In this document: in pieces, positions 22 to 23,647 of the stretch
Layout of the letters: each line of letters starts with the position of its first letter
Position numbering within the stretch: position 1 is the stretch's first letter
DNA from: Glycera tridactyla
Lineage: Eukaryota
Direction: 5' to 3'
Assembly: GCA_965644265.1 (NCBI GenBank)
Contig: OZ286462.1
Location: 37,758,001-37,822,000 of the forward strand
DNA: 64,000 bases
Notes under the pieces: generated by a model
The model's input: the letters and a program-made list of their open reading frames with translations, nothing else
What the model was told of the DNA's origin: nothing
Database searches by the model: none
Program-made: the position numbers and the translations under genes

Positions 22-734
22 TAACAAGAGCGCAAAGCTGCGCTGGGTGATCTCCAGTGTGAATTGGGGGATAGTGACAAGGCCTTCTTCAGGAATTTGA
101 GATCGCATCGAATCGCCGTCATTTGTGCAAGTGCTGCTCTCTGATTGGCTGGTTTTACAAATGTTATCTACAACTTCAATCATGATTCGGCGCAGTGATC
201 TTTGAAACCTGGTAATGAGGTGCGAACAAGAAGCACTACTTTACACCCCCTATAAACGACCAAAACTCAGATTTTTTGAGATTTATGCAAATAGATAAGA
301 CAAATGGATGTCGAGGAACTAATTCAGATGATTGTTCCAACAGAGTGTTCGATTTTGTCCATGAAACCTGATAATGAAGTGCAAACAAGAAGCACTACTT
401 TTTCAAAGTGGGCGTGCCCAAAGAACTCGATTGACAGGCATTTACTATTCGTGCGTAGCTATACATCTCTGAGCAGTCGTATCTGTGTGCTTTGATGATC
501 GGCCACAAAAACGAGTGTTGAGAGAATTTCGTATTTCGTAATCGCTACATTTCCTCGAATTGTCGTTCATCAGATCAATAAATCATCTTAAAATTGTGTC
601 AGATTAGATCATTTGATCCTTTTATACAGATCCGATCCAGATTCGTTCAGTCATATTATCCTCGAGAGTCAGAATCGGCGAAGTTAGAAAGCATTTCGAG
701 CAGAGAGGTGGTAGCATAGTAGAGATCACAAAAA
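22..734 (-). mobile_element. Possible non-autonomous Helentron/DINE-1-like element
   Basis: Left end TAACAAG followed by hairpin AGCGC-AAAGCT-GCGCT and GTGATCTC (47-54); reverse complement GAGATCAC (722-729) followed by AAAAA. Only an 8-bp inverted match, so tentative. Internal ~40-bp duplication at about 205-250 and 363-410. Confidence 0.35.
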
Positions 735-877
735 GCATATGAAATGAAAAGGGTTTTGGTGATTCATTATCACTCCTCAGCCTCAAACTAAAACACAGCT
801 GATTTGGATATCAGGTGTTCAGTGTCTTCGGATCTGGAAAGATTGTCTCTCATGAGATTGCTGTTATCCCCCGGAAT

Positions 878-964
878 TCAAGACAAGTAGCATATTAGTG
901 CTTCTTCCCTGCCAATATTTTTCACTGTCCATTGACCTGGCACTGGATATTTGTGGCACAATAC
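878..964 (-). CDS. Last coding exon of SGNH-domain gene (VLCHKYPVPGQWTVKNIGREEALICYLS*), isoform using the 4958 acceptor
   Basis: Acceptor CCTTGTTTCTAATAG| at 965-979, phase 0, matches the phase-0 donor at 4841; TGA at 878-880. Confidence 0.55.
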   Translation of the reverse strand, partial: VLCHKYPVPGQWTVKNIGREEALICYLS

Positions 965-971
965 CTATTAG

Positions 972-3900
972 AAACAAGGCTGTCTCATGGGCGAGACATA
1001 ATAATGGCAACGCCAGTTGTATGAGGGGATGGAATCACCACCACCGCCACAACCACAGATTACTGCCACCAAAATCCACCATCACCACCGCCATGGACCA
1101 CCAACACCACCACAATGGACCACCAACACCACCACAATGTATCACCACCACAATGGACCACCAACACCACCACCACTGCCATGTACCACCACCACCACCA
1201 TTGCCATGTACCACCATTATGGACCACCATGGACAACCACCACCATCACTATGTACCACCACCACCACCACCACCACCACCACCACCGTCATGTACCATC
1301 ACCACCACTGCCATGGACCACCACCACCACCACCACCACCACCGTCATGTAACATCACCACCATGTACCACCACCGCCATGGACCACCACCACCACTATG
1401 AACCATCACCAACACCATGGACCACCACCAGCACCATAGACCATCACCACCACCATGGACCACCACCACCACCACTGCCATGGAGTTCCACCACCAGCAT
1501 GGACCACCACCACCGCCATGGACTATCACCACCACCACCATGGACCACCACCACCACCATAATGGACAGCCACCACCACCACAATGTACCACCACCACCA
1601 TAGACCACCACCACCACCATGGACCACCACTACCACCACAATGGACCACCAACACCACCACAATGGACCACCACCACCACCATTGCCATGTACCACCATT
1701 ATGGACCACCACCACCACCACCACAATGTACCACCACCACCATAGACCACCACCACCATGGACCACCACTACCACCACAATGGACCACCAACACCACCAT
1801 CATGGACCACCACCACCACCGCCATGTACCACCACCACCACCATCATTGCCATGTACCACCATTATGGACCACCACCACCGCCATGGACCACCACCACCA
1901 TGAACAACCACCACCATCACTATGACCACCACCACCACCAACACTGCCATGTACCACCACCACCGCCCAACACCACAATGGACCACCACCACCGTCATGT
2001 ACCATCACCACCACCATCACCACCATGTACCACCACCACCCCCATGGACCATCACCACCAACACCATGGACCACCACCACCATGAACCACCACCACCGTC
2101 ATGTGACATCACCACCACCATCACCACCATAGACCACCATAGACCACCACCACCACCACCACCACCACCACCACCATAGACCATCACCACCACCATGAAC
2201 CACCACCACTCTCACCTACATGTAACATCACTACTGCCATGGAGTACCACCACCACCATGGACCACCACCACCACCATGGACCATCACCACCACCATGGA
2301 CCATCACCACCATGTACCACCACCACCACTGCCATTGACCATCACCACCACCACCATCATGATCCACCACCACCACCATGAACCACCACCACCACTGTCA
2401 CCACCATGTAACATCACCACCATGTACCACCACCAACATTTACCACCACCACCATGGACCACCAACACCGCCATGGACCATCACCACCACCACCGCTATG
2501 GACCATCACCACCACCATGGACCACTACCACCACCACCATAGACCATCACCACCACCATGGACCACCACCACCGTCATGTACCATCACCACCACCATCAC
2601 TACCATGTACCACCACCACCACCGCCATTGACCATCACCACCACCACCATGGACCACCACCACCATGTAACATCACCACCATGTACCACCACCAACATGC
2701 ACCAGCACCACCATGGACCAGCACCACCACCATGGACCATCACCACCACCACCATGGACCAGCACCACCACTATGGACCATCACCACCATCATGGACCAC
2801 CACCACCACCACCATAGACCATCACCACCACCATGGACCACCACCACCACCACCACTGCCATGGAGTACCACAACCACCATAGACCACCACCACCACCAT
2901 GGACCAGCACCACCACTATGGACCATCACCACCATCATGGACCACCACCACCACCACCATAGACCATCACCACCACCATGGACCACCACCACCACCACTG
3001 CCATGGAGTACCACAACCACCATAGACCACCACCACCGCCATGGACCACCACCACCACCACCGCCATGGACCACCACCACCACAATGTACCACCACCACC
3101 CCATGTACCACCACCACCACAACCATAGACCACCACCACAATGGACCACCAACACCATCACAATGTACCACCACCACCACCACCACCACCACCGCCATGG
3201 ACCACTACCACCACTGCCATGGAGTACCATCACCACCACCATGGACCACCCACCAGCGTTCGGAGCGGACTGCCGCGCAACCATGGCCCACGCTACTTCG
3301 GCGCCGATCGTCGAGAGGGGCGGGCGTCCCTCCCCATGGAATCTCGAGCTGGAGGTCCGTAGCGAACCGGTGAGTCACCCGTGGGACCACATTATCTGGT
3401 TATGGCCAAACACTACCGAAACCGACGTGTCCGGTAAAAGTTCGCAAATCGCCGTCATTAGGCGCTTTCCTTCACGGTTTGGTCACAATTTTCGAAACAG
3501 TATGTATTCTCGCATCATATTAATGGTGTATTAGGTGATATTTCGCCAAATAAGCGTCGAATGAAGTCTGTGTTCAGGCGAGGAACTCGCGCATCTTCTT
3601 GTCGTTTGATTCGGCAATTTCCGTAGGTCTTCGGTTACTTTCGGCTCACCGATAATAAGATTCAAGATGGCGGCGGCCGGTTTTTTGTGCCCTATACCGG
3701 AAGCAAGAACCCAATTTCCAGCCTCGTTCTCGCATTCGGCCGCCATCTTGCTCGAGGTGCCGACAACTTCGCGTTATGAAAAAATACTTTCGATCGGATT
3801 TTTGAGGAGGTGGAACATATCTTATCACAGCTTTGATACAAATTGTATAGAGTAATCCTAACAGAATACGTTCGTCCTACCGCTTTTCGTTCGACACGAG

Positions 3901-4704
3901 AAAAATTTCGAGAACATTAAGCCACAACGTGATGTGGAACCCTACGTCAAGAGATCAACGTGTCGGAACGCCGACTTCAAAGATGTGCTGTATTATCGAT
4001 GACAACTTCGACGTTTTTCAATGGCGATTTATGGAAACATTTTTTTCAGCAATATGGTCTCCATGTGAAGCTTATTTTTGTTATTCCGCACATTTTCGTG
4101 CAAATTCTGTCATTCTAGCACCAGTAGTCACTTCTGTGGGGAATGCATGGAACCCTATGTAAAAAATGGTTTTTCCCAAAAAAATCGAGATCGAGGCTGA
4201 AATTCAAAAAACGAAGAAATGTAGTATCAGGAGAATTGCGGTACGCACGCGTTGATATGTGACACATGGTTGAGCATTCTATTTCAAACGAGAGATTTCC
4301 GTACGAAAATTTGACCAAAAAAATTTGTTTTCATTCTCACGACCTTGAAAATGCCCTGAGGTCAACCATATTGGGTAAAATTGTAGACACTATAGGAAAG
4401 AGGTTGTGTGTCGAATATCATTCAAAACGGATGACATTCCCATGAGATATGGACGCTCGAAGTTTGCATGTGATGCTATGGGCGCCGATTTTCGAGGGCC
4501 CAAACGACCTTGAACTTTGACCTGGATCAAGACGAAACTTAGATGGACGCGTGCGTCTGACCTCAGAGATTCTTAGCTATAGGAGGTCAAAGTTTGTGCG
4601 ATCGACGGTTTTCGCGCTATGAAGTGAAATTCGCTAAAAACCACGTCATTTTGCAAAAACCAAGTGAGATAAATCCAAATATAATGGCGTTGCCATTATA
4701 ATAA
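972..4704 (-). mobile_element. Helentron-associated (HINE/DINE-1-like) non-autonomous element, about 3.7 kb, carrying a central tandem array
   Basis: Perfect 15-bp inverted pair ATAATGGCAACGCCA (1001-1015) / TGGCGTTGCCATTAT (4685-4699). The 4680-4700 end is itself a hairpin (TATAATGGC-GTT-GCCATTATA). On the minus strand the other end reads subTIR, stem-loop TGTCTC-GCCCAT-GAGACA, then GCCTTGTTT, as in DINE-1. Confidence 0.7.
1045..3255. repeat. (CAC)n-based complex minisatellite, about 2.2 kb, punctuated by CATGGA/CATGTA/CATAGA/CAATGG motifs
   Basis: Direct reading; produces overlapping poly-His/Pro/Thr ORFs in all three plus frames and poly-Val/Trp/Gly ORFs on the minus strand. Confidence 0.95.
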
Positions 4705-4840
4705 GAGATTCACCTGTCTGATAGCAGTTTGTACATCAGTCAGACACAGTATGTTCGCATATTACATACCCAGTGGAGTCATATCTCTCAGCTATTATAT
4801 GATAAGGAAAAATGAGCTGATGAAATGTGGATAAACTTAC

Positions 4841-4958
4841 CTTCATCTTCCACTTCTCCATTTTCGTAAGTGGCAATGGTTTACACTGCCTTTGCTTCTC
4901 ATGGTATGATGATGAGAAATTGTGAAACTTCTTTTGATCATGTTGTGACTTGATGTGC
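4841..4958 (-). CDS. SGNH-domain gene exon, basic C-terminal region (HIKSQHDQKKFHNFSSSYHEKQRQCKPLPLTKMEKWKMK); alternative acceptor would start the exon at 4963
   Basis: Strong donor AAG|GTAAGT at 4840; tandem acceptors TTCATTCAG|GGCAG|. 118 bp, phase 2 to 0, keeps the frame open into exon 878-964. Confidence 0.65.
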
Positions 4959-5533
4959 CTGCCCTGAATGAAGAAATTGAAGAAAGGTTTTCAACAACAT
5001 TAATGATTACAGCTTTGAAATATGAGAACTTCTGGATTGATGTGCTGACCATTATACCTGCATCTTGCTTCCAAAATGAGAGAAAAGTCGAGTGACCCTC
5101 GAATCCCATGATAATGGATGACACAAAAACAAATAATTTGGTTTGTATCAAGTAAGGGCTAATCAGACATGGATTACAGTAAACTCACCCCAGTCTTTCT
5201 TCGGAACTGTCGTAGTGGTCGGTTCATCCTGAGTATACATTTCTGCTTGAATTGTCTTCTGAAAAAAACACATAGATATACAGCATTACCAGTGGCAGAA
5301 ATTCTCACATATTCTTGTACACATATGGCCAGACAGACAGACAGACAAAGTCAGGCAAACAGGCATGCTTGCAACTGGCAGACAGGCGGAGAGGCAAGAC
5401 GGCCACTGACGGAGAGTCAGATATTAAGAGAGTAGGGAGAGAACATCGGATGGACAGAAAGACAAATAGACTGATTTAGTTGGAGAATATGCATGGATAA
5501 CTCCGAGTGGGAATTTGAGGGGAAAGAGTTTAC

Positions 5534-5608
5534 CTCTTCTTGTCGCGAATGTACCTTCCAAACCTTCTTCTCGACTCTGTTGCAGATCTCGATTCTCCTG
5601 CCAATAAT
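5534..5608 (-). CDS. SGNH-domain gene exon (LLAGESRSATESRRRFGRYIRDKK)
   Basis: Acceptor TTATCCTTTCAG|, donor GAG|GTAAAC, 75 bp, phase 2-2, open in the frame set by the upstream exon. Confidence 0.75.
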
Positions 5609-6269
5609 CTGAAAGGATAAAACCATAACATCTGTTGTTAGTGCAGGTGATTATATGTGTCAGCCTGCCCGATGGGCAGGTACTAAACCACTTTTCAGTT
5701 TATGATTATACGCAGCAGGGCAGTTGAAAATAACAAGGAGGGCAGGTGTAAATCACACTTAACCTGCCTACAGGACAGAGACCTGCTTGATGATCTTGAA
5801 ATTCACCATGACCGCATGTGAATCATATGTGTTTTGCCACATGTAAAGGGGGTTCATGAGGGGACCTGAACCCTGACCATGGGCTAAACATTCTCACCCA
5901 TCCCCGAGGAAAACCCACACACGAATCTCCATCGGGATGAAACTCTAACATCCCAAGTTACCATAGTTCACCCACACATCAAATCACACTTTTAAAATAT
6001 AATCCCCTTCAGTGTATAAACACCACAGGGCATAACAATGAAGATGCACCAGCCCAATGTGCGGTCAGCTTGTAAAATCACCTGACATAACAACGACGGT
6101 ATTGCATGTATTGCAGTATGGCGGGTGACCGCATGAAGCTCAATCCATCATAATGTTCTAAATGAGCCAAAGATGAAGGATGTGTGTCAATTTACCACCC
6201 CCCCCCCCTCTCATGAAGGCAACAGTGCAACAGTGCAATTGTGATACAAAACAAAATAATAGATGATAC

Positions 6270-6389
6270 CTCTTGCAAGCTGATTCCTCTGCATCGAAAT
6301 TGCGCTCCATTTCATGCTTGACAACTGAGCAGATGAATGAGTGTAGGATTGAATTTCCATATCTGGAGGGGTGTAGCTGATCATGCACT
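6270..6389 (-). CDS. SGNH-domain gene exon with block V (VHDQLHPSRYGNSILHSFICSVVKHEMERNFDAEESACK)
   Basis: Acceptor ATGTTTTGTAG|, donor GAG|GTATCA, 120 bp, phase 2-2; D-x-x-H-P-S-x-x-G catalytic Asp/His motif. Confidence 0.88.
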
Positions 6390-6945
6390 CTACAAAACAT
6401 AAGATCAGGACCAATCACTTGCTGTCCATGGTATGATCCAAATTATTATTTCAGTAGAAAATACTATCTTAAATAAAAATTCATTCTCTCTGAGTTTACC
6501 CTGAACTAAAATTGTCAGCATGCACTGTATAACGTTCATAAAAATGAGCAAAATCAATTAACAATTGATTTCAAAATGGATTCAGGTACAAGTGATAAAC
6601 ACCTCATAGGGTTTGCTCTAAATTAAGATTTCAGGCCCAACACATTAATATGACAACTCATCCTGAGTTCCCCACTTGCATGTGTGGAGCTGTGTGAAAG
6701 ATCAGATATGATCCTGTTCGATTTGATCATACAAAAGAGACTCCACTTGAGCCAAAGATAATAATTCCCAAAGAAAGTAATACTTCTTTGGTAAATTTTA
6801 GCAACATTTTCACACAGAATTACACCTCCTTGCAGTGAAGGCTGTAAATCTGATCCATAATATTTCCCTGTCTAGCAAAAATTGCCATATATCTGTGTTT
6901 ATCAAGAATGACAAGTGCGCGATAATGGGTGCATTTTTTCATGTA

Positions 6946-8442
6946 CCGAATATACTCCCATATCAGCCCATTTTTTTAGACCAAAATATCAGGGCAAAAG
7001 TCGAGTATAAATTTCCTCAGAGCCAAATATCAATGTAAACAAAGAGCCGTGGTTGGGTTTCGCTAGCGCCGGCCGCCATCTTGGATGTTGAAACAACCGG
7101 TGCTCATACCAACAAAGACACGTGCAAATGTCATCAAATTTTACAAAGTTCCTATCCTAATAAAAGTCTATCAATGCAAGAAATACGTCAGCAATATATT
7201 GTGTTATTCATCAAACAATCTTTTTCATCACTAGCGATCATTCTCAAAACGCCAAAATTACTCGCCGGATGTAAATTGTTAGTCCCATACGCACAAATAT
7301 GGAATCTAATGGCAGGTTTGATTATCGGTTGGTAGAAAATCCCGACAAATTCGCCATAAATGTGATGAAAACAATACGTGTATAACCATCAGATTTTGTT
7401 CCGCCACTTCAACCACCATTCGTCACATGATCGATGATGACCAAATATGGCCAAGGACAAGAAAAAACTAATTTGCATAATTTATGTGAGCTATTCATGA
7501 CATAATTCCGAAATTTTGCTTTATATCCGGGATGCCAGCCTCATCACATGACATACCGTATTCTACCTAATTAGCACCCGGGGCGCTTGCTAATTGAGAA
7601 AGGGGGGCGCTTATTAGTTCAAAATGTCGAAAATCGCCGATGGGCGATAATCGGGTATTTTGGCGAACAATCGCCGATGGCAGGTGAAATATCAAAGAAA
7701 CATTCGATAAATGTATCACTAGGGTTCTATTCGTGTCATATAGCAGAAAAAGGGATAAAGCTACAAGGATACGACGAATATTCATCGAGTAAACAGTGGC
7801 GGCGTTTGCATATCCACTCTCACTTTGACAAGTCAATCTCGTGTAATCAGACGTAGCTTGCCGCGATGAATAACCAAGAAATATTGAACTCACGGTAAAA
7901 ACGATCATGCGAATGAGTTTCTAGGCATTAAATTGTGTGGTATCCATCCATAAATCTCGAAAATCCGTCGAATATTCGCCGAAAACAGTGGAAATATCGA
8001 GCGGCAAGCACTGGCAACTTCTCCCTCCCATGGGAGGGGGGGGGGCGCTTATGAGGGTGGGGGCGCTAATTAGGGAGAATACGGTAACAATGGTGCTCAA
8101 ATCGCTGGGGAAGAAGCCAGCCTTTCGTTTTCATCGCGAAATACATGCTTTTTCGGCCTTGTCACGTGTTTTCACTGACGGAGATCGCCTCAACATAGAT
8201 AGTACTCGTGAATCATTTGAGTATGAAGGCGCGAACGAACAATGGCTGGGTTAAGGCGTGAAATGGCTTCTCTACACGATTGTCTTTGATGTATCACGGC
8301 AATAGTCGCAAGTTGACTTGCTGAAATTCGCCATGCTCAATCAACAGCTTATATTTGCGATATTGACTAAATCCCAACGTTTGGAGGAGAAAACGTACAC
8401 CCGGGTTAAACGCGGAGAAGGCTTATATGTGAGTATATACGG
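6946..8442. mobile_element. Tc1/mariner(pogo)-type MITE hosting a nested MITE
   Basis: TIRs CCGAATATACTCCCATATCAGCC / GGCTTATATGTGAGTATATACGG, TA on both sides. Confidence 0.7.
7556..8084. mobile_element. Tc1/mariner(pogo)-type MITE, CCGTATTCT family, nested in 6946-8442
   Basis: TIRs CCGTATTCT(A/C)CCTAATTAGC; TA duplication; homologous to 13072-13724 (inverted) and the fragment starting at 15659. Confidence 0.85.
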
Positions 8443-8739
8443 TATACATATCTAATAAGGTGTTTTTTCAAAAATTCCGATGAATGACAGAGTACTCAGA
8501 AACGATGATGAAATAGAAGTTGAATTGAATTGAAGTTCATGAGACCTGACTCAATTTGGTCAAAGAACTACTTCCTTGATTAGGAGATATTCTAGCATTC
8601 ATTGTGATTATATTCGATTCTGTTATGATATTTTTACAGAGTGAATTTTCATGCCTATGGCTGTTTATGAAGCTTGATGAATGTTGTTGGGAGTTCATTT
8701 TGGTGCAATCCTGCTCACGAGGTTTTCTTACAGACAGAC

Positions 8740-8890
8740 GGACAATACAAATTCTATATGTCTACCCCACCGGGGCGGGGGGGGGGGGGGGGGGGAGGGG
8801 GAGACATGATGAAGTAAATAGCAAGACCAAAATCTGACAAGTTCATTGGATCCTTCCACGAGGTATGCTGACCAGATTTCAACGAATATG
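8740..8890. mobile_element. DINE-1/HINE-like terminal fragments (GACA microsatellite plus stem-loop ending in AGACAT)
   Basis: ACAGACAGACGGAC...ATGTCT...poly-G...AGACAT; 8820-8890 resembles 15880-15950. Fragmentary. Confidence 0.4.
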
Positions 8891-8987
8891 GATGAGTAGT
8901 TCTACCGCAATCATGCTAACAAGATTCGAGACAGACATTAGGTCATTACAAAATCTATAAGTCTCCTCCATTAGGGGTGATACTCAC

Positions 8988-9122
8988 GATAGCAGCTCAT
9001 GCGACCATGGCTGATCGAACACCACGTAACTCACGATGCGAATCTCTTCAGGGTTTGGAATCAATTTGTGCAGTTTTCTCAGCTCATATGTGTATAAGTT
9101 TGCACATACTTCATAAGAATCC
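8988..9122 (-). CDS. SGNH-domain gene exon (DSYEVCANLYTYELRKLHKLIPNPEEIRIVSYVVFDQPWSHELL)
   Basis: Acceptor TATTATCTTTTCAG|, donor ATC|GTGAGT, 135 bp, phase 2-2, links block III exon to block V exon in frame. Confidence 0.85.
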
Positions 9123-9188
9123 CTGAAAAGATAATACCTTCGAATGTACAACAGTCCTGTGAGCAAAAATGGCTCGGGATAAAGAATA

Positions 9189-9365
9189 CAGTAAAACCTG
9201 GCTTAAGTGAAAAGTCATGGGACCAAATTTTTCTTTCACTTAAGACAGGATTTTGCTTAGCGCAGGACAATTATAGTGAGAAAAAAACATACGGGAAGAC
9301 CGTGGGGTGTGTGCTTAAGACAGGATTTTGCCTAGCGCAGGTTTACTCTCAAGCAGGTTTCACTG
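9189..9365. mobile_element. Tc1/mariner-type MITE, CAGTNNAACC family
   Basis: TA-CAGTAAAACCTG ... CAGGTTTCACTG-TA. Confidence 0.75.
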
Positions 9366-9615
9366 TACATTCAGTGTGTGAGCTTGTGTATGTGCTTGTG
9401 TGTGATTTTTCTGGTGTCAGTGAAGTATCACAAACGAAGATATGATTCATGTGGGAAATACTGGATAATTCGGGGAATGGGCTATCCCCAATAACACAAT
9501 ATCTTCTCATCCTAAAGTAACTTGATTATTGATCTTGTGCAGGGTTGACATCAAAGACAGACTTGACAGGATTCTAAGTAATATGCTATTCGGTATCGGT
9601 ATCACCTATACCCAC

Positions 9616-9805
9616 CTTCGACTCAGGATTTCTCCGATAAGAACCAACTTATTATGTCTCTTATGTAAGGTCTGTGCGAGCTGGAGATGCTGCTGTGCTG
9701 TTGGTGTGAGGTTATGTGGTAGGAGCCACGGGATATTGTTTGTGCCAACATGTAGAAAAATGACATCAACTTCACTGTCAATCTCATATGCAGGGGAATT
9801 AGTGA
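9616..9805 (-). CDS. SGNH-domain gene exon with block III (TNSPAYEIDSEVDVIFLHVGTNNIPWLL...KLVLIGEILSR)
   Basis: Acceptor CTATGTTTCAG|, donor AAG|GTGGGT, 190 bp, phase 1 to 2; VIFLHVGTNN motif. Confidence 0.9.
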
Positions 9806-10972
9806 CTGAAACATAGAGCCAATATTACCTACATCAATCTAGTGGATGAAATTAACAATACGTTCATAATCTTTAATGTCTCTCACTACTGATTGATTTT
9901 TTTTCACCAGAATCAGCCATGGCATGGTATGATATCCAACTCAAGCAACATGTCTTTGCTCAAAGCACACAGTTTCATCAGGGTCTTATACCAGGGAGGA
10001 GCTTGACTGTACGGTCCCTCAAGATTAAAACTTTCTTGTATGCATGCATGTTTAAAGCAGGCAGGCAAGTTGGTAGTGATGACCTGCTGACCTGTTCTCC
10101 AGCTCTCTCATTAAAGTGTTGCCAGTGCTATGTAGCCCCTACCCCAACCCCCACCCAGCAGGCAGCACATCCTGCCTGCACTGTAGGCAGGCCCATGAGC
10201 ATGGTCGAACCACAGTAGATTTCACAATCATTTGATTCAGACTCCTCAAAACGTCCATCAATCTTGGATTACTGGCTGCAGATCTCACTGATATCACCAA
10301 CATGCAACAGTAGTATCGCGATACATACATTTCCATATATTGCGATTTGATACAGCTGACAGTATCGTGGTGCACCAATGCACGGTGATTCTTACCACAT
10401 AGTGATGAGCCGAACTAGAATATAGTCGAATTTGATTTGATTGCACCAAGAAATCAAACATTTGAATGCCAACTTGATGTTTGATTATTTGATTTTATAG
10501 ACCACCTGATCCACAGTCTGTATATTTTGATGATGGATACATCCAAATCTGACCACTATATCAGCTCACCTTACCCCCAACTCCATGCTCCAACCCCTCT
10601 CAGCCACATGCTGGAACAAATGTGCTCTATGAGTAAATGGGGAATACTTGGTTACCATGGAAACTCAATGAGGCCTGGTACAAGGCAAGTTCGAATGTTA
10701 TTGGCCCAATCCCTAAATGTCATTTCCTTAATACTGTTTTGATAATTCCCATCTACACTTGTCATCCAAAATCCCCTCATGATGAAAGTGCTTGAGCTTG
10801 TAAAGGAGTACAGTCAAAGCTCCTTTGAAGACCACCTCCCAACACTATTACCACACATACACAGTACATCTGAGTCCCTAACATTATGACTTGTTTTTGG
10901 TGCTAAATATACTTTTTTATATGGTATTCAGGCCTGAGATGTCCAATCATGACACTAGAGACAGTGTATTAC

Positions 10973-11081
10973 CTTGTCGTAATGTTTGAATAGTAGCTCC
11001 AGGGTATGCATCCACTGTAAACTCACATCCATCCATTAGTTCAGGGACGTATTTCAAAATACTATCAGAAATGATGTGCAC
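10973..11081 (-). CDS. SGNH-domain gene exon with blocks I-II (VHIISDSILKYVPELMDGCEFTVDAYPGATIQTLRQ)
   Basis: Acceptor CCTCTCTTTACAG|, donor AAG|GTAATA, 109 bp, phase 0 to 1; (G/S)DS nucleophile motif and PGA oxyanion-hole glycine. Confidence 0.9.
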
Positions 11082-12236
11082 CTGTAAAGAGAGGAATGAA
11101 CAGGAACCAGATGTCAAAATTTAAGAATGTTTGAAATGGTGGGACCATTCGCTGAAACCAATTTCAATGGCAAGAGTGGAATACATAATACACTACCAGC
11201 TACATAATGTAGCTGGATGGTCATGAAATGTGTATGTGTACTAACGGTTTTTATTCATTTATTTATTTACTGTTGTTTATAGACAAGATTAAGAAATAAA
11301 AAACAATTCTGATTTCCATTCAGAAATCGTGTTACTGTTACAATAGAACTGGATCTTCGGGTTAGTCGAGCGTTAGTAGGTGGTAGTACATACATTCAAT
11401 ACCACATGGCGGCTCCGGTTGTCATCAGCTATATCATTTAGCAGATAGCTATGAGCCATTCTTATCATTCAGGACAAACAAACTAATAAGTACTTTCAGT
11501 ATACAAGTGATCTATCTTCGGTGTTAGATAAATAAAAAAAGATCAAGGTACAGTTGCTGCTACAACCAGGAGAACATCAACTGTTCCGATTAAATTGAAA
11601 ATTTGGTGGCAAAGTTTTGGTAGGCAATCACTACCAAGTACCACCGCTCCGGACTTTAGAGGGCAACTCGCTCCTGACTTTTAAAATATGGTGGCCAGAG
11701 GGTAAATTTGGTAGCCATCGGCTACCCACAGGTAGCAATGTAGAGCCCTTCAAATGGTAATACTGCTGGCGACGTTAGACTGACTGCAATGCCCCTCAGC
11801 AACTTTGGTGAGGCGAAGTAATGAGGAATTTCGTCTGAAGGATCATTCAGCGTCATCAGAAGTCCTCACCCAATGCTAGGATTAATGTGGGATTACTATG
11901 AAATGCATATGTGTCAAGTTTGTCATGGCTTGGAGAAAGGACCTTAGAAACAAGCAGATCAATGGAGCAATATGTCCCACCAACAAGAGCTAAAGCATAT
12001 GGGACAAAAACTGGACCTTTAAATGCCACATTAGAATATGACCAATGTCTTGCCTCTGAACGCATCCCGACCCAAACCACACACACAACTACTTGATATT
12101 CATCCCCTTGTTGTATTCTGCATATAGTTCAGTGAGAATTAAATGTTAGATAATATGGAAAACTTCTTTGCTTGGATGAAACATGAGCAGCTGGGATTCA
12201 TTCATTCATTCAAATCTGATATCAGCAGATACTGAC

Positions 12237-12329
12237 CTTGATATTGTATCTATCAGTGTGACTAGCAAGCTCATTGAAATCATCCATGCTCCTCCTACTG
12301 ACTGGCGATTCTCTATAGTAAGAGGGATG
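12237..12329 (-). CDS. SGNH-domain gene exon (HPSYYRESPVSRRSMDDFNELASHTDRYNIK)
   Basis: Acceptor GTTTTGTTACAG|, donor AAG|GTCAGT, 93 bp, phase 0-0, open in frame. Confidence 0.75.
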
Positions 12330-12709
12330 CTGTAACAAAACATTCACAACAATGTTAGAACACACAAAAGAAACTGGTCTGCCTGTGGCAGCTGGACAGA
12401 GTGAGAGCTCTTTAAAGTCAGATCTGCCAACCGCAGTGCCATGTACACCATGTCCTGGCAGGCTGAAATAAGCAAATCTTCTTCGAGATTCTCAGCACCA
12501 TCAGTGAGATAGATTCTTTTGAATTTATTGAGTGAGTTTCAGAAAAGGATGACACATGCATGAAACGTATAAACAAACACTGGAACTAGAGCTTTGTCAC
12601 AGACCCGAATCATTGTCTTGATACCGAATGTACACAATATAAGCAACATATGTGTGTGCATGCATATGTGTGCGTGCATTTGCAGAGTAAAGAAAGTTAG
12701 GGGTGTTTG

Positions 12710-12933
12710 CAGGGATGCATCCAGGATTTCCCAAAATGGGGCTTTGCCCCCTTAAATTTGAGAAAAGGGGTTGTTTCTTCACAATCTCTCCAATAATGGG
12801 TTCAATAAATATGAGAAAGTGCAGCCTGCTTGTTGAATTAGGTGGCACTGTGGCCCCTAGTTGCCCTGAAAAGGGGCCCACAGTCTGTAAAATGTGTGAA
12901 ATGCCCATATGCCCCACTCTGGATGCAACCCTG
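12710..12933. mobile_element. hAT-like MITE with imperfect 6-bp target duplication
   Basis: TIRs CAGGGATGCATCCAG / CTGGATGCAACCCTG; flanks TGTTTG / TGTATG. Confidence 0.7.
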
Positions 12934-13071
12934 TGTATGTGTATCTGAAGTGAACTTCTCGTTTTGTCTATTTCTTTGTTCTCTTCACTGAACAGAACAA
13001 AGAAATAGATGAAACTATAATTTTAATGAGGCACCTCCTCACTCAATATGTCTCCCCAAACTTTGTAATCA

Positions 13072-13724
13072 CTGTATTCTCCCCAATTAGTGCCCCCACC
13101 CTCATAAGCGCCCCCCCCCCCTTCCCCCACACACCCCCACGGGAGAGATAAATTGCCGACTGGCTTCGATGCTCCCGGACATTTGAATTTCCCGCACTTT
13201 CTGAGCCAGCGTGGAGCCCAGATCCAAGATGGCGGTGCACATGTGGGTGAAAATTTCGCTCCTTGCCGCCTGATATTTCCGCCATTTTCGGCAAATATTC
13301 AACGGATTTGAGAGATGTATGCATGGATACCACACATTTTCCACAAGTCATTCGCACTATCGTTTTTACAATGAGTTCGATATTTCATGGGTTTTAATCG
13401 CGGCAAACTATGTCTGAAAACACAGGATTGACTTGTCAGTGACAGTGGTTAAACAGACGACGGCAGACGCTGCTCTTCATCACTGTTTTTCGGCTAATTT
13501 TCGTCATATCCTTAAAGTTTTATCGTTATTCTCCTATGTGACACAAATAGAACCCGAGTGATACGTTTATCGAATGTTTCTTTGATATTTCGCCAACCAA
13601 TGGCGTTAGATTTGCAAAAATAATCTATTATCGCCCATCGGCGATTTTTCATATCATGAAGAAATGAGCGCCCCCCTTTCTCAATTAGCAAGGCGCCCCG
13701 GGGTACTAATTAGAGAGAATACGG
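13072..13724. mobile_element. Tc1/mariner(pogo)-type MITE, CCGTATTCT family, inverted relative to 7556-8084
   Basis: Ends CTGTATTCTCCCCAATTAG and CTAATTAGAGAGAATACGG-TA; internal similarity to 7556-8084 in reverse orientation. Confidence 0.8.
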
Positions 13725-13853
13725 TAAAAGCTACCCGCATACATGCCTGGCTTCCCACCTGCTTGCTTATTCATCTTCAAGTGAGCATGCTCACTGAAAA
13801 GCTAGACATTATTGGTTGACAACTATCTTTGAGTGACCAATGATGTAGTACAC

Positions 13854-14001
13854 CTTGTCATGAGTACGAAAATGTGTTCTGGGGTATGAGGTGTACTGGG
13901 GTAAAGGGGTCTCCTTGTGTAGGATTTGTCCTCGAGAATATGCAATAGAGGCATCAGAGAAGTTCAGTTGAATTTGAGTCAGCGGTTTCAGTTGAATTTT
14001 G
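13854..14001 (-). CDS. Probable N-terminal-region exon of SGNH-domain gene (KIQLKPLTQIQLNFSDASIAYSRGQILHKETPLPQYTSYPRTHFRTHDK)
   Basis: Acceptor CTTCCCTTGTCAG|, weaker donor AAG|GTGTAC, 148 bp, phase 2 to 0, open in the required frame. Confidence 0.5.
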
Positions 14002-14075
14002 CTGACAAGGGAAGCTCTTGATCAGGTCTTGATCAGTGACCCAGGAAACTAGATCAATTCACCATGTGAGATTTG

Positions 14076-15483
14076 CAGGGCCTGGACAAATCCGTGTTGC
14101 AGAAAATACAGACGGAATCGCAGAATTGACACAAATACATGCAATAGTCGATAAACACGTATCGTGCAGAATACAGCTGGAATAAAATAGAAAGCACAGA
14201 ACACCAACTTCTAGATCGCACGGAAATCACATAATTCCACCTCGAATTATCGCGGTGAATGCATATTTCCCTCTCATCAACACCCTTTGTCAAATGCACG
14301 GAAACGCGAAAATGCCGGAAGAATGAACAAGAAGCGATCTTTTTACTTATCATGGTATACGAATCGCCATCTTATATCCGTCTCTTTTGCGCATTGCATG
14401 ATGGGAGATTTTGAAAAAAATATAAATCGTGCGTACCCTGTTCCCTCCAACCCCAGCCTCATTCTCTATTTGCGCCATACAAATATAAGATCGCAGACAG
14501 TACTGTCGGGACTAGGGTTCGCGATCCCAAGGCATCATGGGAAAAATAAAATTTATTTCGAAACGATTTTCTCTCTATATACCAATAATAGTCAAGATAG
14601 GCCACTGATCTTTCGTTTTGCTCGCAATATGAGATGCAGACGTGGGTTTATTGCGTCTAAAAGCTGGATTTCTGGCCCCTATTTGTGCCTTACAAGAAAT
14701 ACCAAGATGGGGCCCGATATTAAACTAGCCTTGCTATGCAGTCAATCTCTCGCGATCGGATGAATTACCTCGAGTTGGCCTTATACAGTCAAGATGAGCT
14801 ACTGATCTTTCGTTTGGCTCACGATAAGAGTTGCAAACGTGTGTTTATTGCGTATAAAAGCACCATTTCCGGTCGCTATTTGTGCCTTATAAGAAATAGT
14901 CAAATCTCCTCTAGAGACCACCTCTCTATAAAGACCACCTCTCTATAAAGACCACCCTGAGCTGTGACCATGGGAGTATTTTCAAGAGTGAATGACCTCC
15001 ATAAAGAGACCACCCCCCTATAAAGACCACTTTCTGATGCGACCGAAGGTGGTCTCTATAGAGATGTTCGTCTGTACCAAGTTGGAGACATTCTATGCAG
15101 AAAATCACGGAATATATGAAATTTGAACATGGAAAATTAGCGCTTGGTGCAGAACTTCATGATCCAGAATGCAGGAAATGCAGAACACCCAATTTCTATG
15201 GTTGCAGACAACACAGATTTGACCGGAAAATTAGGTGAATCTTCACAGACAAAACAGAAAGTACCCCAAAATAATAACACAGAATCTTAATCAAAAAGTT
15301 GGCGTGAAGCATGGAATTTGCCGAATTTGACCAAATTGACAGGAATTCCTGAGGTTTCACATGGATTTGACGCGGAATTTGGTATTGAACTGCGGAAAAA
15401 TGCAGAAATTCTGTGTTTTGCAGAAAGTGGCAAAAATAAACACGGAATTGGCAACTTTTAAACACGGATTTGTCCAGGCCCTG
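14076..15483. mobile_element. hAT-like non-autonomous element with 6-bp target duplication
   Basis: TIRs CAGGGCCTGGACAAATCCGTGTT / AACACGGATTTGTCCAGGCCCTG; GATTTG on both sides. Confidence 0.85.
14897..15074. mobile_element. Tc1/mariner-type MITE (AAAGACCACC sub-repeats) nested in 14076-15483
   Basis: Degenerate TAGTCAAATCT start, repeated TATAAAGACCACC, ends CGTCTG-TA. Confidence 0.55.
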
Positions 15484-15658
15484 GATTTGTCCATATCCTC
15501 AAATTCTGAAAATAGCTCCCATGACCTTGACCTTTGACCATTTGGCACCATCTTCAAAACGTCAGTGTATCACCACTAGCCTGTAGATGCACTCAATGGG
15601 TGTGAATGCCCTGCAGAGTGCATGATGTCACAGGAAGAGGGGATGAGAAAAGTCAATA

Positions 15659-16035
15659 CCGTATTCTCCCCAATTAATGGCCCAGGGCGCTTGCTAATTG
15701 AGAAAGGGGGCGCTTATTTGTTTGAGATGACGAAAATCACCAATCGGGTGTTTTGATGAACAAACGCCGATGGCTGATGATATGATAGAAGAAACGATAG
15801 ATAAATGTATTCCTCGAGGCTTTTTGTGTCATACAAAAGAAAAAATGATAAAACTATGAGTATACAACAAACCGATATCTGGTCAGTTCATTGGACCCTG
15901 GGGGTATGCCTGCCAAATTTCATCAAATTCGATGGTTAGATTTCGGATGTTAGATTTGTGACAGACAGACAGACAGACAGACAGACAGAGGCTTGTCTCT
16001 AACCCTATCCAGACATACAGCTACACAAATTTGTG
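15659..16035. mobile_element. Truncated CCGTATTCT-family MITE followed by a DINE-1-like terminal fragment with (GACA)n
   Basis: TA-CCGTATTCTCCCCAATTAATGG start; (GACA)n at about 15960-15988; ACACAA-AT-TTGTGT hairpin then GACATAAA. Confidence 0.55.
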
Positions 16036-16700
16036 TGGACATAAATCTAACTTCAAAGTTCAACTTCTACATGGAGAAGTGTAAGACCAGGCAGACAAAC
16101 TAGGTGTTTTGCTTTGCTTGTCAGGGCGCCTCACTAATGTCCTGGGCGTGCCGAAATCACGGTCGGGTGGGTGGATCTCAAAGTTACACGTCTTCTCCTG
16201 TGCATATTCATGTTGATTTGCATCTAAAAGATGAGAAAACCAGTCATCTTTGTCAAATTTGCTAGCAGGTGTCTTCAGTTTCACAAGTTCGATCGCTATC
16301 TTTGAAGCTGGAGATAAGAAAGAAACAACAGATATCTGTCGCGATCCCCGATTGGCCAAATCCCCACTCCTGGTGAAATCAACAAATCAGCGACCTGCTT
16401 TCATGCAGCTCACGTTGTTCGAATTGCACAGTAGACAAGTTCCATGTCTCCATCAAACGAATAGATTTTCCGAAAATGGCCACATCATCGATCCTAGATC
16501 AAATTTGTCATCTTTCTGGTATGATTTTCAAGAAATAGCGATCGATAAACGTTTCATGAGTGAAGATAAAGCAGTCGCGAGATGTCAACAACAATTGCAG
16601 AGGACGATTTTTGAGCAACTGCTTTCGGAACCAAGAGGAAGCCGATCTTACGAATGAATTTATCACGTTTGATGCGTTTTCTAAGGAAATTTGACTTATA

Positions 16701-17553
16701 CAGTCCAACCTGGTCTAACGAGCACCTCTATATAACGGATCCCTGTCTATACCGACCACTATCGGTAACGACCTTCGTATTTTCTCTTTATTTCACCTGT
16801 ATATAGCGACCACCTGTCCAACGCGACCACCGACCGCCATTTTGATGTTTGGTAATCGAAAATACCTGCATATAACGACCGCATCTTGTCAGGCTAGTGA
16901 GCAAGGCGATCGGTGACGAGAGCCGTGAAACATGAGATGACCGTGTAGAGAAGCCAATTCACGCCTTACCACGGCTATTGTTCGATCGTTCGCGCCTTCA
17001 TACTTCAATGATTCACGGGTACAATCCATGTTGAGGCGATCTCCGCCATTGAAAACACGTGTCACGGCCAGATAAGCATGTATTTCACGATAAAAACAAA
17101 AGGCTGGGCGCCATTGTTGTGGCTAGACACGAGTCTGAAGACCCGGATGTACGACAATCACGGAACCAAAATATCTAATTTGCATATGACCTTGACCTCA
17201 TCACCTGATCGAGATGGTGGAACTTTCACGAATCGTTGTTTTCGTTCAATGTTTTCATCACGTTTATCAGCATCTATGGCGAAATCGTCAGGATTTTCTC
17301 AGAAACAATCATCAATTACGCAAGTAGAGTCGCCATTTGTGTGTTTGGTACTATTTATTGACATTCGGGCGTATTCTGGCCATTTTCGAGCGCGATCAAG
17401 ATTCGAGAAGAACATCGTTGACAGCGGCATGTCAGGAATCTGACGTTCTGGTTCTGGTTCTGGTATGATTCTGATCTGCATATAACGACCACCTCCCCAT
17501 AACGACCATTTTCTGACCTGACCGTCCATGGTCGCTATAGACAGGTTTGACTG
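16701..17553. mobile_element. Tc1/mariner-type MITE (CAGTCNAACC, ATAACGACCACC sub-repeats)
   Basis: TA-CAGTCCAACCTG ... CAGGTTTGACTG-TA; interior 16930-17110 resembles the reverse complement of 8100-8290. Confidence 0.8.
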
Positions 17554-17591
17554 TACATACAAGTGTTTTCTCAATCCAGTTGATGTTCATG

Positions 17592-18155
17592 CAGGGCGCA
17601 AAGAGATCACCTCACTTCCCGGGCGTGCCGAAATCGCTGTCGGGCGGGTGGATCTCAAAGTTACCAGTCTTTTTCGGTCGGGCTCATCTGCACAGACTTA
17701 TGTTGTATTGCATCAGAAAGTCACGAAAACGAACTATATTTGTCAAATTCTCTGGCGAGTTTCGTTACTTTGACAAGTACAATAGCCATCTTTGAAGCTC
17801 GAGATGAGGAAGAACCGACAAATATCTGTCACGATATCTGATTGGCCAAATCGAGAATCGCGGCGAAATCCACCAATCAGCAGGCTGCTTTCATAACGCC
17901 GAGATGTCAACAACATGTGCGGAGGACGATTTTTCAAGCATCTGCACAGCTTTTGTAACCATGTGGAAGCCAATCTTACGAATGAATTTAGCACATCTGC
18001 ACATATTTTCTATGGAAAATTCAACTTGTATATAAGTGTTTCCTCATTCCATGTGACATTCGAGTACGGACATATTGTTTTTCGACTGGGGCGGGTGACA
18101 TTGAATTTCACCCGCCCGATTGGCAGGTGGGTTTTTTCGATGTCTTCGCGCTCTG
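17592..18155. mobile_element. hAT-like MITE (CAGGGCG family) with 5-bp target duplication
   Basis: TIRs CAGGGCGCAAAGA / TCTTCGCGCTCTG; TCATG on both sides. Confidence 0.85.
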
Positions 18156-18418
18156 TCATGAACGGACCGGTTGTTTTTTGAGGTGGGCTGGTGATTTGAG
18201 TTTTTCTGATGTCTTTGCACCCTGCATGTGATCCAAAAATTTTCATGTTGAACATAGAAGTTTACCTGCCTGATCTTGGATCCACATAATTTGGGCATGC
18301 TCGTGCCTCTCTCTTGCCGCCTGCCCCTACCTCAGAGAGCCCTACTATATGTTAATGACATTAACCATAATATTCCATCCATCCCACAGGCAGATGAATT
18401 TGGAATGAATATGCTCAC

Positions 18419-18501
18419 CTTGGGCATATACCAGATGCAGGCCCTGTCAAAACAGGCCAGAGAGGCATGGTATCACTGAGAGTCGCCAAATACAGGAAAA
18501 C
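18419..18501 (-). CDS. Tentative early exon of SGNH-domain gene (VFLYLATLSDTMPLWPVLTGPASGICP)
   Basis: Strong donor AAG|GTGAGC; weak acceptor CAATTAG|. 83 bp, phase 0 to 2, bridges 19968 and 14001 in frame; contains an in-frame ACCATG alternative start. Confidence 0.4.
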
Positions 18502-18592
18502 CTAATTGTACTGTTTGGTTTGATGATTCTTGAGAAAGAAGACTTGGGTGCTGGAGGAATGGGTGTCATGAGCAGCATGTGTAAGTATGTAG

Positions 18593-19014
18593 CAGTCTTC
18601 ACAAAAAACTTTTTCAGCCACTCTCCCGTCGGGAGGGCAGTCTGAAAAAATCACTCTCCCGAAAATGAATTCACTCTCCCGAATTTGTTCAAAAGGTGCA
18701 AGAAAAACAATCTCGAGAGCATGACATTTGTGTGAGTAAATGCCTGATCATGTCATGAATTCCAACTTATCTATCATGTGAGTGAATATCTAAGTAACTC
18801 CAACCCATTTTTTGCCCAGTCTCGTTCTTCAGAATCAAATATGCGCAGGTATATGCGAAGTAATCTTGCCGTGGATAGGGTGAAATTTCATAACTTTCGG
18901 ATCAACTGAAAAATTTACACTTTCCCCATGGGAGAGTGAGTTTGGTCTTTTTACTCTCCTGAAACCGAATTCGCTCTCCCAGGGTTTCGGGAGAGTGGCT
19001 AAATTCTAAGATTG
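18593..19014. mobile_element. hAT-like MITE with 6-bp target duplication
   Basis: Ends CAGTCTT...AGCCACTCTCCCG / CGGGAGAGTGGCT...AAGATTG; ATGTAG on both sides. Confidence 0.75.
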
Positions 19015-19066
19015 ATGTAGAATGTGAAAATCTGAAAATTTCACCTTTGACCAATACCTTCAACAT

Positions 19067-19287
19067 CAGCATTTGTGAAAAGTTTTCGGGCTTGTCAGAC
19101 AATTTGTCAGACATGAATTTGCCCATCGTCTGACAATTAGCTGTTTATGTCAGACATTTCTATTCACTATTGATCAAATTTGTGTCATTATGTCTGACAA
19201 TTTGTAAGACAGAATTCTAGATTACGTCTGACAACTGAGAGTCCTTGTCTGACATGTCAGACGTCTGACAAGTTTTTGCGAACACTG
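19067..19287. mobile_element. hAT-like MITE with TGTCAGACA sub-repeats and 6-bp target duplication
   Basis: Ends CAGCATTTGTGAAAAGTT / AAGTTTTTGCGAACACTG; CAACAT on both sides. Confidence 0.75.
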
Positions 19288-19613
19288 CAACATAGGTCAC
19301 ATGCATTGAATAGGGGATGATAAACCTTCGCTTTCCCATAACAGCTTGATCTATAGTCAACAATTCTAGCAATACAACAATATGAAAACGTAAAAAGGCT
19401 ATGGGGAGTCAGCTGGCTGCGCATTATGACTTGGGTATGTGTACCAGTGGTCCTGACGGCTCATATTCTACATCCTTCTGTTCAAGGCGTACGGGCACTA
19501 ATTGTGGTATATAATCATCATCAACAGGGTTTTATCTAGTCCAATATATAGTAACCCATTAATGAGATAAAAATGGCTTTATATGCGGATAAACAGTACT
19601 GAGCAAATGGATA

Positions 19614-19777
19614 CAGTCAAACCTGTTCTAAGCAGCCACCGTTCGGGAAGACAAAAAGTGGCTGCTTAGGGCAGGTGGCTGCTTAGTGCTTGCACAGGTT
19701 AATTATAATGAAAAAAAAAACAGGAAATTGACAAGTGGCTGCATAGGGCAGGTGGCTGCTTAGGACAGGTTAGACTG
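19614..19777. mobile_element. Tc1/mariner-type MITE (GTGGCTGCTTAG sub-repeats)
   Basis: TA-CAGTCAAACCTGT ... ACAGGTTAGACTG-TA. Confidence 0.8.
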
Positions 19778-19967
19778 TATATGAAATCTCATCCCAGCTG
19801 TGCACCCCAACATCAATGCCAATATTGAGAACCTGACAGCCCATTATCAATTTCATGAGAAGTAAAAAGGTGGTAACATAGAGCCCTAAGATAGCCTCAG
19901 TCAAAGTGTGTCTTTTCACATGAAAGGGCCTTGACATTGAAAATGAAAACTGAAATTCCACACTTAC

Positions 19968-20087
19968 CATATTATCAGCTTCCGCTCCCATCGTCTGCAA
20001 TTGTGTATGTTCTGCTGGCACGGGTAAACTTATTTGAGGGCAACCTTGTTCACTCTGGAGGTTATTTCTTTCTTGAGGCTCATCCAT
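19968..20087 (-). CDS. Probable first coding exon of SGNH-domain gene (MDEPQERNNLQSEQGCPQISLPVPAEHTQLQTMGAEADNM); exon would extend to 20105
   Basis: ATG in GTAATGG context; consensus donor ATG|GTAAGT; acceptor TTCTCATTACAG| before 20105. Full model gives 1278 nt, 425 aa. Confidence 0.5.
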
Positions 20088-20379
20088 TACCAGTATCAGT
20101 ACTCACTGTAATGAGAATTGAATGGAACAAACTGTACATCAGCAGATAAATCAAGACATGACACAAACAGGTGAATCAACTCAAAATTGGTCAACTAACT
20201 GGAGAATGTCCAATTATTGGTTATCTGCCTACAGGAAGTGACACAAACTCAAGCACCTTTTGAAACAAGATTTTGATTGATGCCTGTTTTTTTTAAAATA
20301 TGTCACAAGAGATATTAGTAATTATGTGGCGGCCTAGTCTAATGGGCTCAGGAGGGCAATTAGCTTTCTTTTAGAGGCC

Positions 20380-22790: not shown

Positions 22791-23470
22791 TTAAGTGTAT
22801 TTCATGCTAAATAGTGTAGGATGCAAGAGATTTGAGATCAGGAGAGGCCACATTTCAGTGTTAAATCATAAATGTCCGTGTTTGACTCATTCTTGATGCA
22901 ACCTCAATTGTTCCAATTCAGCTAAAAGGAACTGTCTCTCTTCTGGCTGATAGGAGGGGTCAATTTCATAATAAATACGGTTCAATGATCTATTCTAGTG
23001 GGTACACTCTTTTAACGGAAATGAAGAATGTTCTGTGATAGGACTTCCAACTTTTACAATGGACACCAAACTACAAGGCATGATGTGGCCCATTGATACG
23101 CATGTTGATGTCAGGTTTGATGCATGTCTGTGCATGTTATGCATGTCAGATGAGACATCATGGTTTGCAAATCATGAGTATTTCTGACATTTTATTTTGG
23201 AAATAGTTCTGTGATGATGAACACTAAAATACCAAATATTCGGAAATGACCTCTGATGAGTGACCACCTAACTAACACAACCAGCGACTGGCATAAATAG
23301 TTGTGATTAACTGCAACTACTGACTACTCGAGGTGACCACTTAGCGACAAAGACAAAATGATCCTCTATCAGTTTATCGGATGATGATATTTCGGTGCAA
23401 ATTCAATGTTTTGAACCTTGAAATGGTTAATACAACTCCATACAAACTCCCTGCTGTATCTTCAGTAATA

Positions 23471-23642
23471 AAGTGAAACCTGTCTTGGGAGACCCCTCTT
23501 TTGGGAGACCACCCTCTAATGGGAGACCGCTCATTATCGACTTCTTTATTTGACAATCAAACATACCTCCAATGAGACCACCTGTCTTGAGAGACCACTT
23601 TTCGTTGGCGTTTTGGGTGGTCTCCCAAGACAGGTTTCACTG
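23471..23642. mobile_element. Tc1/mariner-type MITE (GAGACCACC sub-repeats)
   Basis: TA-AAGTGAAACCTGTCTTGGGAGACC ... GGTCTCCCAAGACAGGTTTCACTG-TA. Confidence 0.8.
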
Positions 23643-23647
23643 TAATA

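Follow-up and report, generated by a model that had tools for sequence, protein, structure and literature searches.

The 64,000-nucleotide stretch of the Glycera tridactyla genome analysed here (assembly GCA_965644265.1, contig OZ286462.1, positions 37,758,001 to 37,822,000; hereafter the window) raises the question of whether a set of short open segments on its minus strand represents the exons of a working host gene for an SGNH esterase and, if so, how this gene is related to the esterase domain found in the open reading frame 1 protein (ORF1p) of long interspersed nuclear elements (LINEs). The original prediction, made from the DNA letters, had joined five such segments and proposed that a LINE esterase was domesticated by the host and acquired introns afterwards. 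Our analysis points, with a probability of roughly 0.75, to a functional host gene interrupted by introns, which belongs to a set of seven paralogues forming four old lineages and encodes a compact SGNH serine esterase with an Arg/Lys-rich tail. As the evidence stands, this is a well-supported gene family lacking annotation, and not a new kind of system.

Exon structure and purifying selection in seven paralogues

The five minus-strand exons are all flanked by AG/GT sites and, joined in phase, give 215 codons without a stop in one frame, the other two frames being full of stops. The joined product contains the four SGNH blocks (S-D-S-I, P-G-A, H-V-G-T-N-N, and D-Q-L-H-P-S), which provide the Ser, Gly, Asn, and Asp-x-x-His residues as originally described. 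Searching the species' own 2.04-Gb assembly with exons 2 and 3 returned exactly seven loci, and the gene is thus not single-copy. The same result confirms the five-exon observation far beyond chance, since six further loci contain exons 2-5 in open frames, with boundaries and phases that are identical. Taking exon 3 of the gene described here (chromosome C10, 37.77 Mb) as the reference (100%), the amino acid identity was 98% for the copy on C17 (56.13 Mb), 67% for those on C10 (66.63 Mb) and C4 (132.03 Mb), 57% and 52% for those on C11 (27.41 Mb) and C31 (9.92 Mb), respectively, and 45% for the copy on C28 (44.40 Mb).

Exons 2-5 have equal lengths, phases, and AG/GT flanks at all seven loci, except for the exon-4 acceptor of the C4 copy, and the 184-codon domain frames are open throughout the family with every catalytic residue retained. 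Block I reads S/T-D-S-I, the oxyanion residues lie in P-G-A (R-G-G in the C28 copy) and G-T-N-N, and block V reads D-Q-L-H or D-G-L-H in each of the seven paralogues. The domain comprises approximately 165-185 residues and is followed by the short Arg/Lys-rich tail. Altogether, the proposal of a multi-exon host gene with three introns inside a compact, catalytically intact SGNH domain is upheld by the conservation at seven loci and by the selection acting on them.

Comparisons among the copies demonstrate that the domain exons are under purifying selection. The ratio of non-synonymous to synonymous substitution rates (dN/dS) was 0.15 when the gene was compared with its C17 duplicate, which is 90% identical (nine synonymous and five non-synonymous changes), and 0.11-0.13 between the old paralogues, for which dS is saturated. 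Exons 2-5 are 96-99% identical to those of the C17 duplicate (96.3% for exon 2), in comparison with 91-93% for the introns and 93% for the introns flanking exon 2. Between the old paralogues, the coding exons alone are conserved, and the other pieces in common are common repeats. Additionally, six of the seven genes form three pairs located on different chromosomes (C10/C17, C10/C4, and C11/C31, with dS of 0.077, 0.023, and 0.026, respectively), which is suggestive of large duplications of recent date or of homeologous chromosomes that differ in age.

The gene also extends beyond the exons first proposed (Table 1). Exon 6, which encodes the basic tail, has conserved, in-frame counterparts in the C4, C11, and C31 paralogues, and a matching basic stretch occurs in P0001, a relative described below. 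This exon ends in AG followed by GTAA, which can be read as a stop codon (TAA, 5530-5532) or as a strong donor site, and the raised conservation over about 700 bases after it would fit a 3' untranslated region (UTR), with the protein stopping at that TAA. No AATAAA was found on the minus strand from 578 to 11250. The 425-aa product reaching down to position 878, as previously modelled, could not be rebuilt. At the other end, a candidate first coding exon joins in frame to position 12329 and is 95.8% identical to the corresponding segment of the C17 duplicate, with one in-frame 3-nt indel and flanks conserved to an equal degree.

Table 1. Predicted features of the esterase gene and of the adjoining insertion (coordinates of the window).
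Feature	Position	Strand	Remarks
Candidate first coding exon (uncertain)	19968..20087	-	ATG at 20087; 40 codons/120 nt; donor GT 19967-19966; phase 0
Exon 1 of the original prediction, 5' of the domain	12237..12329	-	AG/GT flanks, open frame; coding status uncertain
Domain exon 2: strand beta-1, block I S-D-S-I (nucleophile Ser), block II P-G-A	10973..11081	-	Seven loci, same AG/GT sites and phase
Domain exon 3: block III H-V-G-T-N-N (oxyanion Asn, LINE-type His), then helix and strand	9616..9805	-	Paralogues, exon-profile search
Domain exon 4	8988..9122	-	Paralogues; 99.3% identical to C17
Domain exon 5: block V D-Q-L-H-P-S (catalytic Asp, His), last helix	6270..6389	-	Paralogues; 98.3% identical to C17
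Exon 6: Arg/Lys-rich tail, absent from the original prediction	5534..5608	-	Acceptor AG 5610-5609
Possible 3' UTR, 3' of exon 6 (putative)	4846..5533	-	95-97% identity to C17 vs 91-93% in introns
Insertion missing from the C17 duplicate, not part of the gene	979..4700		3.7 kb, just downstream of the gene

Several observations weigh against a functional gene of this structure and should be considered together. Exon 1 could not be traced in the older paralogues, each of the six differences between it and the C17 duplicate is non-synonymous, and its identity of 93.5% is at the intron level; likewise, the old paralogues have no upstream exon in common. Because the exons 5' of the domain are unconstrained and not conserved among paralogues, the position of the start codon is not fixed, and the N-terminus is either fast-evolving or wrongly modelled. 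Single exons gave no meaningful match in Pfam because they are too short, and the evidence on fold and family presented below comes from P0001, the relative that was scored and folded, which is approximately 40% identical. Moreover, the splice junctions, the transcription start, and the 3' end are predictions from genomic DNA, and the substrate, plausibly a lipid resembling platelet-activating factor (PAF) or another O-acetyl ester, is suggested purely by analogy. Finally, exon 4 of the C4 copy (locus L028, 3975-4106) has GT in place of the AG acceptor and four changed residues at its start; its twin at 66.63 Mb of C10 is intact, and the dN/dS of 0.83 for this pair implies that the C4 copy may be decaying.

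The unconstrained upstream exons, the damaged acceptor of the C4 paralogue, and a gene known from its DNA sequence alone would also be expected of a pseudogene in decay or of an open frame arising by chance. Nevertheless, such an explanation is extremely improbable in view of seven open copies with dN/dS well below 1, conserved splice sites, catalytic residues that were kept, and conservation across species, all of which argue for a functional host gene.

Relatives in other assemblies and affinity to LINE esterases

Exon-by-exon searching, in which an exon-3 profile of the seven paralogues was scored against 1.84 billion representative proteins, retrieved three matches: P0001 (367 aa, from a 1.66-kb contig of ENA ERZ21818088), P0002 (81 aa, from locus L060 of NCBI GCA_003704795.1, contig RCNA010000331.1), and P0003 (129 aa, from loci L058 and L059 of ENA ERZ22147071). 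Word searches of a 5.8-billion-protein set with residues 1-175 of P0001 and with alignment A6 returned the query itself only. P0001 scored 50 bits on Pfam Lipase_GDSL_2 (PF13472; cut-off 32.9), and the hidden Markov model (HMM) of the gene family matched the entire domain of P0001 together with the region of the basic tail (60 bits). The AlphaFold model of its residues 1-185 (predicted local distance difference test score of 75) matched many SGNH esterases in Foldseek with a probability of 1.0 and template modelling (TM) scores of 0.5-0.6; the comparison with the PDB supports the SGNH fold, a ranking of sub-families not being possible from it. Neighbours by language model and shape in the ESM Atlas were unnamed or "SGNH hydrolase-type esterase" clusters, mostly of molluscs and annelids.

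The relative at locus L060 is itself split by introns. Those between exons 2 and 3 (phase 1, with a GC donor) and between exons 4 and 5 (phase 2) lie at places identical to those in the Glycera gene, and the intron between exons 3 and 4 has an equal phase and lies within two codons of the corresponding position. The domain introns are common to both genes and therefore pre-date the divergence of the two animals.

The closest solved relative of the family is the esterase of the ZfL2-1 ORF1p (PDB 4c1b). P0001 alone gave an end-to-end, although weak, alignment to this structure (E 0.04). A profile (A3) composed of P0001-P0003, the L060 exons, exons 2, 3, and 5 of six of the seven paralogues, and two LINE esterase rows matched 4c1b with 63 bits (E 2e-16), in comparison with 26 bits for the next natural SGNH protein, 19-20 bits for PAF acetylhydrolase (PAF-AH), and 14 bits for TesA. 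In a second profile (A5), built without the LINE rows and covering the exon 2-3 half only, 4c1b was still the top match (E 0.011), and PAF-AH was absent from the solved-structure matches of P0001 alone and of profile A5. Besides, 4c1b showed the highest identity to the P0001 model in Foldseek (24%) despite a root mean square deviation (rmsd) of 20 Å, the crystal being a domain-swapped dimer. Judging from these sequence comparisons, the predicted protein belongs to the SGNH sub-group of the LINE ORF1p esterases.

Individual residues are only partly in line with this assignment. It has been reported that H191 and S228 of ZfL2-1 are conserved only in transposon esterases, and both residues were used to argue that these esterases are monophyletic (Schneider et al., 2013, PMC3905857). 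The equivalent of H191, four residues before the oxyanion Asn (H-V/I-G-T-N-N), is His in P0002, P0003, and six Glycera paralogues; the seventh (the C28 copy) has Asn, and P0001 has Ser. At the S228 position (V-S-G-P-L-P in ZfL2-1), all seven genes carry Gly (I/L-G-E-I/V-L), while P0001, P0002, and P0003 carry Ser. The residues that close the acyl pocket of ZfL2-1 (I144, T194, and L281) correspond to Ile, Thr, and Leu in the Glycera gene.

The origin of the family

The Glycera genome harbors abundant LINE esterases of its own. A first look with Pfam Lipase_GDSL_2 gave 2387 candidates (150 of which were scored), whose intronless frames reach approximately 1100 aa, and the sampled LINE ORF1 sequences (e.g., L038-L057) show a low-complexity N-terminus, a coiled coil, and an esterase with G-T-S, G-S-N-D, and D-G-V-H-P-N motifs. 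A multi-copy LINE-like unit with a coiled-coil/RRM-type ORF1 was observed at four loci (L009-L012; C7:93.01 Mb, C10:26.76 Mb, C29:8.20 Mb, and C34:36.64 Mb), where a separate esterase-like frame lies behind ORF1; this frame lacks its own start codon, and an AG acceptor is situated 7 codons ahead of the Ser. With G-A-E-D in block III and no Asp-x-x-His, these copies appear to be catalytically inactive. Among the sampled LINE esterases, this type was the top scorer with the gene-family HMM (24 bits). Its acceptor was considered as a counterpart of the intron site of the gene and rejected, since the two sites are near but distinct (7 codons 5' of the Ser in phase 1 vs 4 codons in phase 0).

Domestication of an intronless LINE ORF1 esterase by the host, with introns gained later, as claimed in the original prediction, is possible but somewhat unlikely. 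The evidence that 4c1b is the closest solved sequence relative, together with the transposon-specific His, the shared pocket residues, and the transposon-specific Ser of P0001-P0003, is consistent with such an origin, and the more than 2000 candidate intronless copies would be possible sources; conversely, the replacement of Ser228 by Gly in all seven genes and the acidic domain (isoelectric point of 5.8-6.4 vs 10.8 for the ZfL2-1 esterase) speak against it. The profile comparisons (hhalign) are similarly divided. The gene family was aligned with each of two LINE esterase lineages of the same genome at P of about 3e-6, closer than those two lineages are to each other (3e-4), and P0001 was nearly as close to the lineage of ORF1 with coiled coil plus esterase (2.4e-13) as to the gene family (3e-15); however, the gene-family HMM gave at most 24 bits with the own-genome LINE esterases sampled, and these comparisons, being of pairwise profiles and not a rooted tree, do not demonstrate nesting inside the LINE esterases. 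No remnant of a coiled coil, PHD, or RRM was found in the Glycera gene, and the old introns shared with a distant relative fit an ancient host gene equally well. Of the claim of LINE derivation, the affinity to the LINE ORF1p esterases stands, and the Gly at position 228, the weak similarity to the LINE esterases of the same genome, and the acidic domain weigh against the derivation itself.

A host gene of this kind has a precedent in texim. These are multi-exon SGNH hydrolase genes without a reverse transcriptase, known from fish, amphioxus, sea urchin, and Oikopleura, which constitute a separate group with relationships to CR1 esterases, PAF-AH, and bacterial hydrolases, although a CR1 origin was not excluded by the authors (Tomaszkiewicz et al., 2014, PMC4021074). 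We tentatively entertain, as a reasonable possibility that falls short of an even chance, that the Glycera family represents an ancient cellular, texim-like SGNH lineage, sister to or donor of the LINE esterase, and that the resemblance to LINEs reflects common ancestry or capture. The introns shared across species, the long-standing selection, and the four old paralogue lineages agree with this explanation, as does the position of the family between two divergent LINE esterase lineages in profile distance. Nonetheless, the transposon-specific His would place the family with the transposon clade of Schneider et al. and not outside it, and the likeness to texim is one of description.

The surroundings of the relatives bring a third origin into consideration. 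At L060 (2-4895, RCNA010000331.1), a C2H2-type finger, which P0001 likewise has at its C-terminus, and a 986-aa open frame with a His/Asp/Cys protease-like motif come after the esterase exons, and the frame preceding the first esterase exon has a hydrophobic stretch, a possible signal or anchor. P0003 (L058 9364-11802 and L059 8125-10500), in which exons 2 and 3 are fused, has an ORF with a NADAR domain upstream and, downstream, an ORF that combines a ULP-like Cys-protease motif with a terminal PHD finger (E 1.9e-7); a weak match to a MULE transposase is located 5 kb upstream, and the whole unit is present twice in ERZ22147071. The P0003 unit may be a large DNA transposon carrying an esterase.

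Taking these arrangements and the reported association of texim with Helitrons in fish (PMC4021074) as models, the Glycera esterase could be the cargo of an intron-containing DNA transposon that dispersed the seven copies. We consider this very unlikely, since the old paralogues share the coding exons alone, apart from common repeats, and the copies occupy only seven loci with dS saturated between lineages. Neither the window nor the fetched loci of the paralogues yielded an exon for a transposase, a ULP, a PHD, or a zinc finger. The C-terminal modules of the relatives (C2H2, ULP-like protease, and PHD) were not found downstream of the gene in the window or at the paralogue loci, and the 986-aa ORF of L060 had no match in the Glycera genome under a strict first look, both of which are not evidence of absence.

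Mobile-element machinery was also not detected beside the gene itself, and the absence of a linked reverse transcriptase noted originally holds for the 64-kb window: no open frame outside a CCA minisatellite exceeds 191 aa, none of the ten longest non-repeat frames has a Pfam match, and no reverse transcriptase was found. Similarly, no long reverse transcriptase-like frame adjoins the gene in the paralogue loci fetched (170 kb). The dispersed, intronless organisation of ORF1 with an APE/reverse transcriptase ORF2 is not what the locus displays, which has three domain introns, seven loci in the genome, and no Pfam domain in those ten longest frames.

The insertion downstream of the gene (Table 1) consists of a CCA-rich minisatellite (1076-3255, units of 19-22 bp) and an interspersed repeat (3380-4700), for which the genome contains 2705 or more candidate copies of approximately 89% identity. 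The stretch 3380-4700 was considered as a link between the gene and the C10 (66.63 Mb) and C4 paralogues and rejected as a high-copy repeat. On the other side, a satellite array of about 382-bp units 5' of the gene (20321-23646) is also found 5' of the C17 duplicate (C17:56126334-56129666) with approximately 90% identity, and the array is therefore older than the C10/C17 duplication.

Possible function and comparison with known systems

The predicted protein would be a soluble esterase with a Ser-His-Asp triad and a Gly/Asn oxyanion hole. Removal of a short acyl group of the acetyl type from an ester, plausibly a PAF-like lipid or another O-acetyl ester, would be the most likely reaction, because the Ile, Thr, and Leu beside the catalytic Ser, Asn, and His match the pocket-closing residues of both ZfL2-1 and PAF-AH. 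The candidate N-terminus has no signal peptide, for which reason a location in the cytosol or nucleus is probable, and nucleic acid or acidic lipid might be ligands of the conserved basic tail.

A lipid or membrane role in retrotransposition has been proposed for the LINE esterases, and to our knowledge their role is still unknown. A catalytically intact and conserved host paralogue offers a route to the substrate of these esterases outside the mobile element, in a host genome where LINE esterase copies number in the thousands and some seem to be inactive. The family can also serve as an anchor for rooting the esterase tree and separating the capture of a host gene by LINEs from the taming of a LINE protein by the host. 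A more speculative and distinctly unlikely proposal is that the seven genes belong to an old protostome host family, with introns pre-dating the split from the GCA_003704795.1 animal, which would be the nearest cellular relative of the LINE esterases, either as an ancient domestication or as the source of a LINE capture. If true, the family might act on the substrate of LINE elements, for instance as a competitor or cofactor of retrotransposition, in a genome with thousands of LINE esterases.

In relation to known systems, the LINE ORF1p esterases (CR1/L2, RTEX, and Penelope-like elements; ZfL2-1, 4c1b) and the Glycera gene are alike in the compact SGNH domain of approximately 170 residues with all catalytic residues, and have the L-P-R/L-S-R and D-G/Q-L-H-P-S motifs in common. 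The work of Kapitonov and Jurka from 2003 is reportedly a source on this ORF1p domain. The Glycera gene differs in that its domain is split by three introns, with further introns on either side, and in that it is present at seven loci only and has no ORF2 or reverse transcriptase; moreover, no coiled coil, PHD, or upstream Arg-rich motif was found in it.

PAFAH1B2/3 (PDB 1wab, 1fxw, and 3dt6) are also small cytosolic SGNH esterases with G-T-N-N in block III, L-H in block V, and a short-acyl pocket, and they superimpose on the P0001 model with a TM score of 0.59, an rmsd of 3.4, and 22% identity. However, they lack the His of H-x-G-T-N, are about 45 residues longer, and are not the closest in sequence, as indicated by the scores obtained with profile A3 (19-20 bits vs 63 for 4c1b).

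The texim genes (teximY and texim1-4 of platyfish), which probably belong to the same SGNH sub-group, resemble the Glycera family as multi-exon SGNH host genes without a linked reverse transcriptase that form a small multigene family with recent duplicates and with relatives associated with DNA transposons. They differ in having been described in deuterostomes alone and in having approximately 15 exons, whereas the Glycera family occurs in a protostome with 6-7 recognisable exons, and the likeness is drawn from their description only. Given this precedent, the concept of a domesticated LINE esterase is not new. What may be new is the occurrence of such an SGNH host family in a protostome, with introns conserved across species, by which a texim-type situation would extend from deuterostomes to protostomes.

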